In this document: positions 190-6,646 of the stretch, piece by piece
How positions within the stretch are numbered: position 1 is the first letter of the stretch
Layout of the letters: the number at the start of each line of letters is the position of its first letter
Position numbers and translations under genes: made by a program
Assembly: GCA_020536535.1 (NCBI GenBank)
Contig: JAHLWZ010000275.1
Location: 99,748-163,747 of the forward strand
Length of the DNA stretch: 64,000 nt
Direction of reading: 5' to 3'
Source: Pelomyxa schiedti
Taxonomy: Eukaryota; Protista; Evosea
Notes under the pieces: model-generated
The model's input: only the letters and a program-made list of their open reading frames with translations
Told to the model about the DNA's origin: nothing
Database searches by the model: none

Positions 190-3100
190 ATGTCGGACAA
201 CAACCCCCCGGTCGCTTTTACCGAAAACCCGAGGAATACGGTAGTCGCTACTTGCACAAAAAAAAAAACAACTTCGCAACTCACTCGTATTCCCCACGTA
301 TAGAACCCAAACCCCAGCGCCATCGAAACCTCTACGACCACGTCGCCAGCGACGTCGACCTCGTCGGCTAGTCCTGCAAGTAGCCCTCCCAGCCAGAACC
401 CAGTCGCCGATCACGTCCAGCAGCCGCGCAATCCCTGCGACAACGACGCTGCTATCGCGGCGGCACTGCAGCAGCGGGAGGAAAACGGCGGCCGGGAGCT
501 CCCCCGACTACCGGAAGAAAACCGTGAGCCTCTGTTGCGTGATACTGGTCCAGTCGCCAAGCACGAGGCGGTGAGTCCACCCAATGCCCCTGACACCATC
601 AATTGTGGAGGCACTGCTAAGCTGGAAGCTGGGTATCACTTACCAGCAAAACGCAATTATGAATATGGGGATGAACCTCCATCTGCATCGCCTCCAAAGA
701 GACCTACTGCCGTAGCCGCTAGTTTCCCGTACAAGCCAGCACTCCCAGATAGAGCGATTATCATTTGTAAGACCTGCCAAACCAGAGTGAAGGATAAGAA
801 AGAATTCCTCAGTCACAAGTGCCCAAACAAAGTAATCGCCTATATCTGTCAAAGGTGCACATCCGAGGCCATATTCTCCACAACTCAGAGTTATGCTGCT
901 CATATAAAGAACACACACCACTTAAGACAACACACCACTTCTGCACAACCACTAACAACAAACACGACATCTATAATCACACATCCCAATCCATTACCAA
1001 TACCAACACCTGTGTCACCATATCCAACACAAAACACACCTTCCCATGCACCACGAAATACACACACTCTAGCTGTAGATATGACAAAGTGGACGACAGC
1101 ACAATTCCCGTGCTCTGTTTGCAATGAGGTGTTCCAGGACCATATCTCGATTGAAGCGCATAAGAGGGAACATAATCACATCTGCGACACAAAGTGGCAG
1201 TGCCGCCACTGTGGAGTACGATATGACGTCCAACATGCACATGCGGCACACATTGGACAATTGAAAAAGGTAAAAACTGCTTCGTGGCACTCACTGATTA
1301 ATCACTACCAAAGGAAATTGGTAAAAACAGATTAAATGACCAAGACACCGAACGGGTCATCGGACTCATTGAAGAGAAATTGCAGAAAATCAGTGTGCAG
1401 CTTCTCCCTTCACTCGAGTTGATTGACATCAAACCCAATGTTCCCCACCCTCAAAAGTCCTCAGGGGGCACAACCAACTCCCTTGCGGACCCACACTCTA
1501 GTTCGCCAGATCCGCATCCAACAGCACCCGAACTCCCACCGTACCAAGTGTTTCCATCACAGGAGAGAGAGGCCCGCAAGCTTTTCGAGATTATTAAAGG
1601 GGAGTGGAACGAACTTCCTAACTCTTACAGAAGCCTGGACGTGCTGATCTTGGTCCAACTACAACTGTTCGATCAGACACTGAATAGAGTGAGGAGCTTT
1701 GAGGAACACATCACCAACAGCGAGCAGTTTCATGGGATGAGGAGGAACCTCCGCATCCGAGTTGTCAAGGGCAACAATTACAAAGATAGAAAACATGACA
1801 CAAGGGAGTTTTTTGACAAAGCTGAAAGGTGCAAAGACGACCCTGAACACTTTTTTGTCATCATCCACGACGAGTGTCACTGGGGAACAAAGTACACCAA
1901 AAAAGAGAAACCTGGTAGGCTTGGCTCCATCCTCAAGGATGCCCTTGTGAGGCCTGGAAACAACATGTTGATACTTCAGATTTCAACAACTGCGTGGAAC
2001 CAGATCGAACTGCTGAAACGATCTTTTGGGTCTGAGAAAATTGAGGAGAGAGAGAAGATTGGGAAGCTTGAGAAGCACGTGCATGTGTGGACTGAGACCG
2101 GTCCTGATGACGGCATGGAATACATTGGTCGCCAAAAGCTGATGGATAGTAAGTGCATCACCGAAAGCAACTCGTTTTGCCTTGAGAAGTGCGAGGAACT
2201 TTGTAACGAGCTGTTTCCTGATGACCCATTCCTGTTCAACAAACTTGCTGCCTCGAGTGACTGGCCCACCTTTTTGAGTCTCATGACGTATATTGCTGCG
2301 TTCATCAAGCGCCATTGTGAAGAGGTTGATTCCCTTTCCTTTTCTCCCGTTTGTGCCTCACCTTTAAACAAAACAGTATTCTGAAGTCGTTCCCAGTGAA
2401 AGATGGATCCAAATTGTGGACTGTCCACACACCCTTGAAGCAGTGAAGTTGATAAAACAGGGTCACATTGTTGCTGTGAGGCTGCCGAGCAACCTGTCAC
2501 GGTGTTACGGAAAAATCATCTCGCGGCTCCTGAAAGGGTTGGGAGAAACAAGATTCTTCTGTGTTCATGATGCCATTGACTCTGACCACGATGGCTCCAA
2601 AACACTCGTGACTGAGGAATGTGCTGTCCGTCTCGCGGCGTTGCAGGGAAGGAGAAAGGCCACATTCCGGAATTACCAAGACCTCAATGGGCTTCCTTGT
2701 CTGCTCGTTCTCGTTGAGAAGGTGTGTGCTTTTTGAATGTGGAGGAGTCTTCCCCCCCCCCCCCCAACCGACTGACTGACAACCAGGCACGAATGGGAGA
2801 CACAATGCCAATCAACTTCAAACTGTTTGACCTGAGGGCACGTTACCTCACTCCAAAGTTTGTTTTTTCGGCCTTCTTGCAGGACATTGGACGTGCATTC
2901 GAGTGGTGTCAGGCTGAAAAACCTGGAAAACCTACCCAAGACTGTATCCGCGTTTACGTCAACTCAATGGCATATCAGTATGCAAAAAACCCCGTTGAGA
3001 CACTTCAGTGTTCCAATGGCCAGTTGGAACCTTGCTTGAAGAAGACCGGCGGCAAAAAATGTCCATATGAACGAGTGAGTTCTTTGACAATGTGGTTCCC

Positions 3101-4147
3101 CCCAGACTTACCTCAATTTTAGGTGCCGGACAACGCTTTCCCAGCGTCGCTGGAGGTGTTCCTCAACCCGAATCTCATTTGGAAGCCATCGGAAATGGGT
3201 TCCTGGAAATTTCTGGAGGAGAACTTGAGTGACCTGTCAGACAAACTGAAGCAACGGTTTGTGATCTCAGCTGAGCCTCAGATCGGCAAGACTGGTGCTT
3301 ACCTCCACTTCATTGAGCTCCTCGTGAATCACTTCGAACTCCCGCCTGCTAACCATGAGGAGGAAATGTTTTACTATGTTCTCGGGAGCCTGACAAACAT
3401 GGATCCCAATGAACTCCACTCCAAGTTGGAACGGGGCGACCCAGAAACACTCCAGAATTGGAGATTTCTGCTTCAGTGCCAAGACAAACTGTTTGAGGCA
3501 ACGTCGGAAAGGGAGCGACTGTTGCTGATACCACCTGAAGATCAGACGGTTCCATCATCACGAGCAGCCAGCTTCATCTGGGATCTGTGCTTTAAACACG
3601 GCCTTCCGCAAGAATCCCTTCTGGACGGCTCCCCCGTGTGTCTTGTTGCGGACATGGGCTGCGGAACTTGTGCACTCGCGAAAAAGTTGAAAGAATACCA
3701 CCCCCAAATACAGGTGCGCGATCACATAATGTAAGTCCCACCCAACCACTATTCATCAACAAACAGGTGACCAACTTTGACCACACATACGGGGAAGAGG
3801 ACAGCTGCTACAAAGTGGTGCCGTGCAACTTCACCAACACTCCAGCCCAAGAGGGAGTGTTTGATGTTGTTGTGTTCAGCATGTCGCTGAGCTGGGGCGG
3901 CGCCAGGCCAGAGTTCGTTCATAAAGCAATCGTGGAGGCAAAGAGGATACTCAAGCCGAAGGGATACATCTTTGTGGCTGACGAGTTGAACAACTGGTGT
4001 TGGCTGGGTGGCGTTGACCCGGTGCCGCGTGCGCTCATGGTAGAATTCGCAAACCAGGCAATCTCGCGGATTGGGAATGATGGGAGCTTGTTCATCAAAG
4101 AGAGAAGCATCGATAGGAAGTACTTTTACCTGGCAATGCACACGTGA
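190..4147 (+). CDS. C2H2 zinc finger + GREB1-like circularly permuted SF2 ATPase + class I SAM-dependent methyltransferase fusion protein (~1210 aa, 7 exons)
   Basis: Exons 190-240, 304-1269, 1314-2324, 2377-2721, 2787-3074, 3123-3713, 3767-4147 are joined in frame by GT-AG introns. Motifs: CxxC..H..H fingers; FFVIIHDECHWG (Walker B, DECH at 1869-1880); LPCLLVLVEKARMGDTMPINFKLFDLR; QDIGR; ISAEPQIGKTGAYLHF (Walker A, 3276-3293); VADMGCG (DMGCG at 3651-3665); FDVVVFSMSL..EAKRILKPKGYIFVADE. Confidence 0.85.
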
Positions 4148-4284: not shown

Positions 4285-5145
4285 ATGTCTCAGAAGTGCC
4301 CACGTTGCACCAAGTCCGTCTACGCAAACGAGCGGTATTTTCCTTTCTTTTGCTTCCTCCTTTTTTTTCCCCAGTCGGTGCCTAGCGCGCGAGTTGAGAG
4401 AAAATGGAATAACTTTGTTTGCGTTAGAGTTTCTGCTCTTGGAAAGGCTTTCCACAAGTCATGTTTCAAGTGCATGCAGTGCAACGGCGCCCTGCAGCTC
4501 GGTAGCGAGTGCGGCGGCCCTGATTCGTTGCCCTACTGCAAGAAATGTCGGTTTCCTTTTCCACCTTATTTTAAAAATAAAAAAGCTGCGAAATGTTCTA
4601 ACTTACACTTCTCATTGAAGGTTACGGCCAGAAGTTCGGCCCTAAGGGTTTCGGTGTGTCTTCCCCCTGTTTTGTAGAAACCCTAGAATTACTTTGGTCG
4701 TGGAGTCTTAGGCATTTATTAACATGCAAAAACAGGACACGGCTCAACAGAGGCAACTAATTCGCAGAGGCGACAACCCGGCGCACCGGCTCCCAATGTT
4801 GCACCCAGTGGGCCTGTTGTTGAGTGCATGATGGATAAGGAGGCCGCCCAGTATGATTCACCACCAGAGCCTGAGCCGCAACCAGAACCCACACCAACTC
4901 CTGTTGCAGTGACTACTCCTGCTTCACCCCCTTCAACACCCACTCCAGCTGCTACTACTGGGCCCAAGTTCTGTCCAGGTTTGAATCTTTTTCGTCATTG
5001 TTCTTATACTAAACAAACTCCCACCCTTATCTGCTAGAGTGTGGATCAAAAACCACTGGTGCCAAGGTAGTTGCCCCGTTTTGTTTCAAAATATTGACAC
5101 TGCCCCACATAGTTTTGCCCAGAGTGCGGAGCCAAGCTGATTTAA
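4285..5145 (+). CDS. LIM-domain (CRP-like) protein with Pro/Thr linker and C-terminal double zinc ribbon
   Basis: Spliced [35 protein letters not shown]...PYCKKC-YGQKFGPKG; C-terminus KFCPECGSKTTGAKFCPECGAKLI*. Confidence 0.85.
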
Positions 5146-5472: not shown

Positions 5473-6646
5473 ATGCTTGTCCCCGATTTTTTTGTGGCCG
5501 CGCACGGGTCGTCCAGTGGCTTCAGTGGTTGTCCCATAATTGTGGTACATTGGCTCTGCCATTTGTTGTTTCCTCGTTTGGTTCGGGCTCCATCCGGACA
5601 CCAACCTCCCTGAACCACCGACCGACCGCGATCGACTCTAACCCCCCACAAAACGACAGCCGGCTTTGACTATCGGCAATGTACCGCAGATGGCCTGTGA
5701 CCTGCTGATTCACAACAGCCACGCGAACCGCGTTGGCTACATTTGCTCCGACGACGTTGTTGCCACATGCGGCGTGGATGCCTACACTCCCCCGTCTTCT
5801 GGCGTTGTTCATACTTCTGTGGAGTGTATTGACTTTCTCCCCCTCTTTTTGGGAATATTTTCTTTCTCTGCTCGTCGCCTACATTTTCCTTATCGAAATA
5901 ACTTAGTGTATGAGTGTCCCAGACCCACGGGTAGTGTATTCATTCTCCAGCAACGCTCTCCAGTGAGACAGGTGATTCCCACCTTTGTATATGTTGCTCC
6001 GCTGATTCATCTTTCTTTTACTCCAGGGTTGTGGCTTGCAATATGCCGCTAGTCTTAGCAAGTGGCTAAAGGACTCTGGGTTTTCCCATGTTGTATTGTT
6101 AGTAAGTATTGATGCTGGGAGAGTGCCACCACAAGAAGGGTACCGTCTTTGGCAATCCTTACATAAATAATCAAACCAATCCCAAACCGAAGGCAAAGGA
6201 ATTAATTGGTTAAACTGCAGCTCATTGAGATTCTTTGTGAATAACCTGGAGAGTGCACTTTCGACTCTCTCCCCCATGGGTCAGAAAGTTACCGAATCCG
6301 ACCTTCTTATGCTCTCTGAGGATTCACCTTCACTCGCGTAGGTGTCCATTTGTGTTGCCCATTCTCACCCCCTTTAGACTGTGGAAGTTTTCCAAAGAGA
6401 GTGCCTTACCCTTTGTTGTATTGGAAACAGTATGCCACGAGGGAGACAATGTAGTTGACGCAGTACAATTCACCTGCCAGGTTAATGACTATTTGCATCT
6501 GTTACCAGGTAGGCAGAACAAACCCCTTGACTGCCAGTAACCCTCTGTTTTCATCAGTTACGGAAAACCCAAGAATAACTGTGCCTCCATCCTGGAGCCA
6601 TACCGTACTCTGGGGTTCTGTTGGCCACACAACAACACTCTACTGA
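5473..6646 (+). CDS. PSMG2: Proteasome assembly chaperone 2 (PAC2 family)
   Basis: Spliced PALTIGNVPQMACDLLI, ILQQRSP, LSKWLKDSGFSHVVLLVS, CHEGDNVVDA, VPPSWSHTVLWG match PAC2 motifs. Confidence 0.85.

Follow-up and report, generated by a model that had tools for sequence, protein, structure and literature searches.

GREB1 is a much-studied gene in hormone response and cancer, and to our knowledge the permuted helicase module that it carries is considered dead in animals and has been assigned no role. The domains of GREB1 were reportedly defined by Iyer et al. in 2013 (NAR 41:7635). In GREB1 and GREB1L the module, a circularly permuted ATPase of helicase superfamily 2 (cpSF2; Pfam PF20692), is combined with a TAGT glycosyltransferase domain (PF20691), and in the animal GREB1 protein it has been described as catalytically inactive (PMC7968844). 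The second system of relevance here is Rrp8, which methylates adenosine 645 of yeast 25S rRNA at N1 (m1A645) (PMC3553958). Here we describe a locus that combines a module of the first kind with an enzyme of the second. It was found in a window of 64,000 nt, that is the whole stretch of DNA analysed (positions 99,748 to 163,747 of contig JAHLWZ010000275.1, assembly GCA_020536535.1), from Pelomyxa schiedti, and all positions below refer to this window. Pelomyxa schiedti is an anaerobic amoeba, and positions 190-4147 of the + strand probably represent one intron-split nuclear gene whose product, a single chain with zinc fingers, a cpSF2 motor and an Rrp8-type methyltransferase, would be a likely nucleic-acid methylase. 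From its N-terminus on, the predicted protein consists of a disordered region, two pairs of C2H2-type fingers, the permuted SF2 ATPase, a helical linker and the Rrp8/nucleomethylin-type methyltransferase.

The locus contains six long open reading frames (ORFs) in alternating frames, which are joined via short introns. The resulting model has seven exons and six introns, all of the latter being GT-AG, in phase 0 and 44-65 nt in size (63, 44, 52, 65, 48 and 53 nt in gene order), and four of the six, if retained, would put an in-frame stop into the message. The exons add up to 3633 coding nt (1210 codons and the stop codon); no internal stop or frameshift was found across them, and each of the six introns has an intact pair of splice sites. 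A sequence-only reading of the window had proposed that the six ORFs splice into one protein of approximately 1210 residues, which agrees with the model once a short exon 1 is added, and each string quoted in that reading was found at its place. Searches were run exon by exon or with stored paralogue proteins, and the column and change counts given below were taken across the separate exon rows of one alignment.

The motor is encoded by exons 3-6, which match PF20692 colinearly along its 716 positions. Exon 3 (1314-2324) corresponds to profile positions 2-157 (E = 1.7e-19), exon 4 (2377-2721) to 298-389 (E = 4.9e-6), exon 5 (2787-3074) to 390-437 (E = 4.3e-6) and exon 6 (3123-3713) to 670-702 (E = 4.2e-9). 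Exon 3 (70.3 bits) and exon 6 (36.0 bits) exceed the curated cut-off of 26.2 bits, while exons 4 (25.9 bits) and 5 (26.1 bits) are marginally below it and still colinear. The locus was also recovered in a whole-genome search with PF20692, and the ResIII profile of Pfam gave weak matches. Most of the RecA-like domain 1, with motifs Ia, II and III, is assigned to exon 3 together with the start of a helical insert. Exon 4 would encode the first part of the RecA-like domain 2 and breaks off after LLVLVEK, which is one half of motif V. The second half of motif V, the string FDLRARY, motif VI and a variable linker follow in exon 5, and exon 6 contains the relocated strand, P-loop and helix with Walker A, a helical linker and motif I of the methyltransferase.

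The permutation is real, since the motif coordinates put motifs Ia, II, III, V and VI ahead of Walker A. A degenerate motif Ia (1644-1679, LILVQLQLFDQT; LILVPPRN(T/S)LxxQT in the relatives) is followed by motif II or Walker B (HDECHWG, a DExH box, 1866-1886), of which DECHW is invariant in eight of the eight core relatives, and by motif III (ISTTAWN, 1980-2000; ISATAWN in the relatives). Then come motif V (2701, with its second half ARMGDT at 2787-2804), FDLRARY (2826-2846) and motif VI (QDIGR, 2880-2894), and only after these Walker A (AEPQIGKTG, 3270-3296). The same order was seen in all relatives. Both the permutation claimed in the sequence-only reading, with Walker B and motif VI before Walker A, and the intactness of the DExH box and QxxGR motif therefore hold, as DECH, QDIGR and GKT are all present.

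A helicase profile compared with the sequences of the PDB gave a single match, to the DxCHWG of MEMO1, which was judged spurious, and thus a search by fold was needed. The segment 545-1130 of paralogue P0001 (KAH3764601.1, encoded on the same contig as the window gene), a protein 70-96% identical to exons 3-6 (69.6% for the exon 3 protein over residues 493-816), was modelled with AlphaFold. The model has a predicted local distance difference test score (pLDDT) of 77.7 and a predicted template modelling score (pTM) of 0.79, and the strand, P-loop and helix are confidently placed at its residues 531-557, i.e., at the C-terminal end. Its Foldseek and VIA-align neighbours were SF2 motors only (Foldseek probability about 1, VIA Z about 10), namely DDM1/ISWI/INO80, MDA5/RIG-I/Dicer, HsdR, RadD, Mfd and UvrB, and the nearest shapes in the ESM Atlas were bacterial ATPases of the HsdR/ResIII type. 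Modelled on the paralogue, the fold confirms the prediction of a two-RecA SF2 motor, and together with the PF20692 match of exon 3 it supplies the resemblance to GREB1 and SF2, by profile and by structure, that had been anticipated.

The C-terminal domain starts in exon 6 with motif I, which binds S-adenosylmethionine (SAM) (VADMGCGTC, 3645-3671). The remainder of this Rrp8-like class I methyltransferase is encoded by exon 7 (3767-4147, stop codon at 4145-4147), where NFDH, FDVVVFSMSLSWGG (3860-3901) and EAKRILKPKGYIFVADE (3935-3985) are located. Exon 7 scored 30.6 bits against Methyltransf_11 (E = 5.3e-7, above the cut-off) and, taken alone from an intron-split domain, 24.7 bits against Methyltransf_8 (PF05148; E = 2.4e-5, cut-off 27 bits). 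The latter cut-off is exceeded by three paralogues (P0002, 60.4 bits; P0014, 51.7 bits; P0001, 32.8 bits). When paralogue P0002 was compared with the PDB, human RRP8/nucleomethylin (2zfu) was the sole match (E = 5e-8); the methyltransferase profile of the family found 2zfu with E = 2.2e-18 and the next methyltransferase with 3e-5. In addition, the model of a paralogue methyltransferase (pLDDT 79.9) had 2zfu as its top Foldseek match (E = 1.5e-10). Judged by profile and predicted fold, the domain is specifically Rrp8/nucleomethylin-like, and the effector suggested earlier, an Rrp8-like class I methyltransferase, was correctly recognized.

Walker A (3270-3296) and the SAM motif (3645-3671) share the uninterrupted exon 6, and the fusion of motor and methyltransferase is therefore independent of any splice. 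In P0006 and P0015, cpSF2 and Methyltransf_8 are found within single uninterrupted ORFs, and both domains are also present in assembled (Trinity) transcripts from Mastigella (P0013) and Echinamoeba (P0017). The proposal that ATPase and methyltransferase reside on one chain, and not on separate mRNAs, is in agreement with the shared exon and with these ORFs and assembled transcripts.

Upstream of the motor, exon 2 (304-1269) encodes a predicted disordered N-terminus rich in P, A, S and T, followed by four zinc fingers arranged as two pairs. The first pair (766-918) comprises a CCHC-type finger (CKTC...HKC, 766-822) and a C2H2 finger (CQRC...HIKNTH, 847-918), and the second (1111-1251) is a classical tandem C2H2 pair (CSVC...HKREH, 1111-1173; CRHC...HAAH, 1201-1251). 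According to translation and regular-expression matching, fingers 2-4 fit the spacing C-x2-C-x12-H-x3-5-H and finger 1 is CCHC. The Cys and His ligands are invariant across five paralogues, and a finger profile matched HIC2 (E = 1.1e-8), PRDM9 (E = 1e-5), SALL4 and ZBTB24. Single-sequence Pfam scores were under the cut-offs, zf-C2H2_4 reaching E = 1.2e-3 on the second pair. The C2H2 fingers expected at the N-terminus are thus supported by spacing, invariant ligands and the HIC2 match.

The positions of several introns can be compared with the protein sequences of paralogues and other relatives. The exon ends correspond to adjacent residues in P0001 (816/817, which flank intron 3 at 2325-2376, 52 nt; 931/932; and 1218/1219) and in P0002 (634/635, 753/754 and 988/989). 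The last pair of each protein flanks intron 6 (3714-3766, 53 nt), which lies inside the methyltransferase domain. The exon 4/5 junction falls between adjacent residues of the Mastigella Trinity transcript P0013 (585/586) and of the uninterrupted environmental ORF P0006 (634/635), and splicing out of intron 4 (2722-2786, 65 nt), which splits motif V, rebuilds the family consensus VEK|ARMGDT. Intron 2 (1270-1313, 44 nt) has a position common to the three tandem copies described below; its sequence and length differ among them and the flanking exons are conserved. Intron 5 (3075-3122) contains an in-frame TAG at 3120-3122, for which read-through or an alternative genetic code was considered and rejected, as the triplet sits in a 48-nt GTGAGT...TTTTAG intron. 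At the 5' end the model includes a putative exon 1 (190-240, 17 codons, MSDNNPPVAFTENPRNT) and a putative intron 1 (241-303; 63 nt, GTAGTC...TATAG, with an in-frame TAG), which at that size falls in the span seen for the other five (44-65 nt). No ATG occurs in frame 1 from 304 to 1081; upstream, only the one at 190 could feed the open frame.

Proteins in which cpSF2 is combined with an Rrp8-like methyltransferase are rare. An exhaustive HMMER scan with exon 3 against 1.8 billion representatives gave 11 proteins, and word-seeded searches of 5.8 billion clusters gave 13 and 14 matches, or roughly a dozen clusters at 90% identity. The fusion is carried by P0001, P0002 and P0014 among Pelomyxa proteins, by the transcripts P0013 of Mastigella eilhardi and P0017 of Echinamoeba exundans, and by the environmental sequences P0006, P0015, P0016, P0027 and P0028. 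It extends past Amoebozoa, because residues 620-876 of P0018 (KAI3644430.1) from the aphelid Amoeboaphelidium protococcarum match the methyltransferase profile of the family (hhalign probability 95.6%, E = 1.3e-8) with the motif IADLGCG; the precomputed Pfam domains of this protein give cpSF2 alone. The window gene is therefore not alone in this architecture: seven Pelomyxa copies have it, and it recurs in further Amoebozoa, in an aphelid and in a small number of metagenome sequences. Pattern hits were also obtained in IMG/VR viral contigs and in bacterial and archaeal genomes, of which none was confirmed by tblastn, a result that does not prove absence. Thus the survey suggested by the sequence-only reading brought eukaryotic relatives to light and no confirmed one in the viral contigs scanned.

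Some of the relatives have features of their own. P0006 (Logan contig SRR30674853_210100, L009) has an OTU-like cysteine protease domain (residues 98-205, 25.3 bits, above the cut-off) N-terminal to the cpSF2-methyltransferase part, all in one uninterrupted ORF of 1024 codons. In Echinamoeba P0017 the string HDGNCGFY raised the suspicion of an OTU domain at the C-terminus, for which Pfam gave no confirmation. One gene of Mastigella eilhardi has an isoform with both domains (i6, 1008 aa) and two that stop before the methyltransferase (i3, 831 aa; i7, 741 aa), and the latter may be motor-only products of alternative or incomplete splicing. P0002 (KAH3732779.1; L004, G000:C1121:13848-17657) is named 'bifunctional metallophosphatase/5'-nucleotidase' at NCBI, a product name unsupported by Pfam, which finds the cpSF2-GREB1 and methyltransferase domains only; its annotated model skips the motif VI segment (…FLQDIGRAF…) that is intact in the genomic DNA. 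In a eukaryote-like Logan contig of SRR25266765 (L010, 9144 nt), cpSF2 pieces are spread over several called ORFs, and ORFs matching ResIII on the opposite strand may be a second, inverted copy.

In an unrooted domain tree of 17 rows one split (support 86/94) separates most of the methyltransferase-fused proteins from a side that holds the TAGT-fused protein of Planoprotostelium, a clade with cpSF2 only, Echinamoeba P0017 and the aphelid P0018. The first 400 residues of members of the cpSF2-only clade (P0019, P0021 and P0030) were examined for a hidden methyltransferase or other effector, and none was found. TAGT (PF20691) had no match in any exon of the window gene nor across the Pelomyxa schiedti genome, and with the Rrp8-like methyltransferase in its place the swap of effector relative to GREB1, as read from the sequence earlier, stands. 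Pelomyxa schiedti has a separate canonical Rrp8 at C213:42382-43024 (L011, L012), which matches Methyltransf_8 with E = 4.4e-31 and is interrupted by two TGA and one TAA, presumably within short introns. Since this match is much better, the fused methyltransferase is not considered an Rrp8 orthologue.

The Pelomyxa schiedti genome has seven copies of the gene. Three of them are in tandem on C275, the first (copy 1) encoding KAH3764601.1 and the window gene being the third (copy 3); the remaining ones are on C1121 and C146 and, more distant, on C97 and C1659. The window opens with the 3' end of copy 2 (1-80, + strand), which ends in ...RKYFYLAVQLKSASGTKW with its stop codon at 78-80. In blastn positions 1-81 are 81% identical to the 3' end of copy 1, and the tblastn match of exon 7 on locus L037 ends at its position 5798, which is the 3' end of copy 2. 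An A/T-rich spacer of 109 nt separates the stop codon of copy 2 from the putative ATG at 190. The 130 N-terminal codons of copy 3 had no DNA match in either of the other two tandem copies. Exon 4 shares 95.7% protein identity with its counterpart in copy 1 (G000:C275:93353-93697, L008:5354-5698). It is probably a gene-conversion tract within the array, because its synonymous divergence (dS) is 0.05, compared with 0.35-0.59 in the other exons. Downstream, 138 nt past the stop codon of copy 3, starts a gene at 4285-4674 (+ strand) which begins MSQKCPRCTKSVYANER and matches the LIM domain of Pfam (E = 1e-8); it looks like an intron-split gene for a small LIM/CRP-like protein.

If the parts of the protein act together, the fingers would dock it on nucleic acid, the motor would open a duplex, or translocate along it, by ATP hydrolysis, and the tethered methyltransferase would then methylate the exposed base. 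We infer that such a protein probably methylates bases of RNA or DNA in an ATP-coupled reaction. By analogy with Rrp8, the methyl group would go to N1 of adenine, in a structured RNA, for example rRNA. Rrp8 acts on the Watson-Crick face of adenine and needs an unpaired base, so that structured RNA would fit best, and on this analogy RNA appears a reasonably probable substrate. The OTU fusion of P0006 is compatible with a ribosome-linked role. DNA is a candidate we hold for somewhat unlikely, kept in view because the motor is restriction-like in shape, the fingers are transcription-factor-like and the family is linked to TAGT. A substrate that is neither RNA nor DNA seems rather improbable.

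Several observations weigh against this reading, and they are best considered together with the alternatives they favor. Exon 1 (190-240) and intron 1 (241-303) are inferred parts of the model. That ATPase and methyltransferase are two separate genes wrongly joined would be in line with the Mastigella isoforms P0005 and P0012, which stop before the methyltransferase; against this stand the exon common to Walker A and the SAM motif, the single uninterrupted ORFs and assembled transcripts of the relatives, and the seven of seven genomic copies in which exons 3-7 are free of stops and in the same order. This alternative, refuted at the sequence level, retains a negligible likelihood. Copy 3 could instead be a decaying duplicate with an open frame and a non-working motor, either a pseudogene of recent origin or a paralogue of copies 1 and 2 with a regulatory or dominant-negative effect. 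DNA alignment with these copies indicates that an in-frame 6-nt deletion and substitutions have turned the family-wide motif Ia VPPRN(T/S)L into VQLQL, and in motif III SAT has become STT, with Thr for the invariant Ala. Relative to the outgroup P0014, copy 3 has 88 unique changes and copy 1 has 45 (p = 2.4e-4). Among NCBI-derived Pelomyxa proteins, protein searches recovered three of its paralogues and not copy 3 itself, and the gap between copy 3 and the upstream gene is only 109 nt. Motif Ia is a nucleic-acid contact motif of SF2 enzymes, and copy 3, having lost it, may couple poorly to nucleic acid and may be losing motor function. On the other side, the stop-free frame and the six intact splice-site pairs speak against decay, as does the ratio of nonsynonymous to synonymous divergence (dN/dS), which at 0.46 relative to copy 1 and 0.36 relative to copy 2 is well under 1, so that the copy is still under selection. 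Copy 3 also retains 80 of the 87 conserved columns (those at least 7/8 identical in the relatives), including all ATP-binding and SAM-binding motifs, with DECHWG, RMGDT, FDLRARY, QDxGR, AEPQIGKTG and DMGxG among what is kept. Of the seven that differ, three belong to the PPR of motif Ia and two to the linker between motif VI and Walker A, and the others are the start Met and the motif III Ala. As paralogue P0014 has Gln for the Arg of motif Ia, this position tolerates some change in Pelomyxa, and gene conversion of exon 4 homogenises copy 3 with copy 1. We hold a decaying duplicate to be unlikely; with motif Ia lost and changes accumulating about twice as fast as in copy 1, copy 3, which changes fastest in the tandem array, is likely a weakened or diverging paralogue and not the best representative of its family.

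A further alternative leaves the architecture intact and concerns its use: the protein may methylate proteins or serve as a scaffold, with motor and fingers for recruitment only, as is now proposed for animal GREB1. Here too some points count against nucleic-acid methylation. The TAGT domain of GREB1 was predicted to act on DNA bases and was shown to O-GlcNAcylate ER-alpha (PMC7968844). The OTU deubiquitinase-like domain of relative P0006 hints at protein-level chemistry nearby, and the fused methyltransferase has a family-invariant Trp (SLxWG) where human RRP8 has SLMG. Class I methyltransferases readily switch substrate class. The structural models, moreover, were built on paralogue P0001, 55-96% identical to the window protein, and the structural neighbours of the motor do not separate an RNA from a DNA substrate. 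Nevertheless, the methyltransferase has just one specific relative, an enzyme that methylates rRNA bases; the ATPase motifs have been conserved, in contrast to the description of animal GREB1, and the fingers resemble nucleic-acid-binding C2H2 pairs. A protein-directed or scaffolding role is thus given little credence, and we keep to nucleic-acid methylation by a single-chain enzyme as the more probable reading.

No description of a fusion between cpSF2 and an Rrp8-like methyltransferase was found in the searchable literature, which did not cover Iyer 2013; within the same limits the architecture is, as had been surmised, not a described family. As a tentative generalization, the cpSF2-methyltransferase proteins might be undescribed ATP-driven, finger-guided writers of base methylation in eukaryotes, which on the Rrp8 analogy would place m1A on DNA or on structured RNA and would keep the ancestral, active state of the GREB1 family. 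If this were true, the ancestor of GREB1 would have been a motor that modified nucleic acids, and its effector would have been exchanged (methyltransferase versus TAGT). A sister branch with every ATP-binding motif and another transferase suggests an origin of the module as a functional motor that brought a modifying enzyme to its substrate. It also raises two testable questions, one on the target of the cpSF2 motor and the other on whether eukaryotes possess a base methylase that depends on ATP and is neither DNMT5 nor Snf2-assisted. Copy 3 adds an evolutionary point of its own, that of a tandem array with gene conversion in which one member appears to be losing a motor motif.

Among known systems the same logic is found in DNMT5 of fungi and algae, in which an SNF2-type ATPase and a cytosine-5 DNA methyltransferase form one polypeptide and ATP hydrolysis licenses methylation. 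An SF2 motor and a SAM methyltransferase in one chain are common to both, although by analogy only, as DNMT5 has a non-permuted Snf2 motor, a methyltransferase of the C5-cytosine family and another domain order. Type I and ISP restriction-modification systems, with an HsdR-type SF2 translocase and an adenine methyltransferase, share the combination of motor and methyltransferase and the HsdR/ResIII-like shape; the window protein differs in being eukaryotic, encoded with introns, and devoid of a nuclease or target-recognition domain. Two reported systems are precedents for opening a duplex in order to methylate an RNA base or ribose, namely RlmKL, a fused enzyme that both unwinds and methylates rRNA, and the pair of CMTr1 and DHX15 (PMC3351187; PMC6232587); neither has any sequence relation to the window protein. 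With Rrp8/nucleomethylin (2zfu), the 25S/28S rRNA m1A methyltransferase, the fused domain has the hhDhGCG SAM motif and the core strand order in common, and it differs in being tethered to a motor and in having the family-specific invariant Trp.

The permuted SF2 module, matched colinearly by Pfam, and the position of motif I after motif VI are shared with GREB1, GREB1L and the GREB1-like proteins of protists, as is the layout of an N-terminal zinc-binding region, a motor and a C-terminal transferase. A GREB1-like protein of Planoprotostelium fungivorum (P0008, PRP75493.1, 2887 aa) has two near-identical cpSF2 modules (approximately 290-850 and 1690-2270) and TAGT. Since both modules retain DE(S/C)H, Q..GR and PQIGKTG, the motors of protist GREB1-like proteins seem to be active, which the human one, by its description, is not. 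The ATPase motifs of the window protein are likewise intact, and the inactivity of animal GREB1 with which they are contrasted is known from its published description only (PMC7968844). The absence of TAGT and the active motifs indicate that the window protein is not a GREB1 orthologue. As judged from domains and motifs, its family is an effector-swapped sister branch of GREB1 that keeps intact ATPase motifs I, II and VI and has an Rrp8-like methyltransferase in the place of TAGT.

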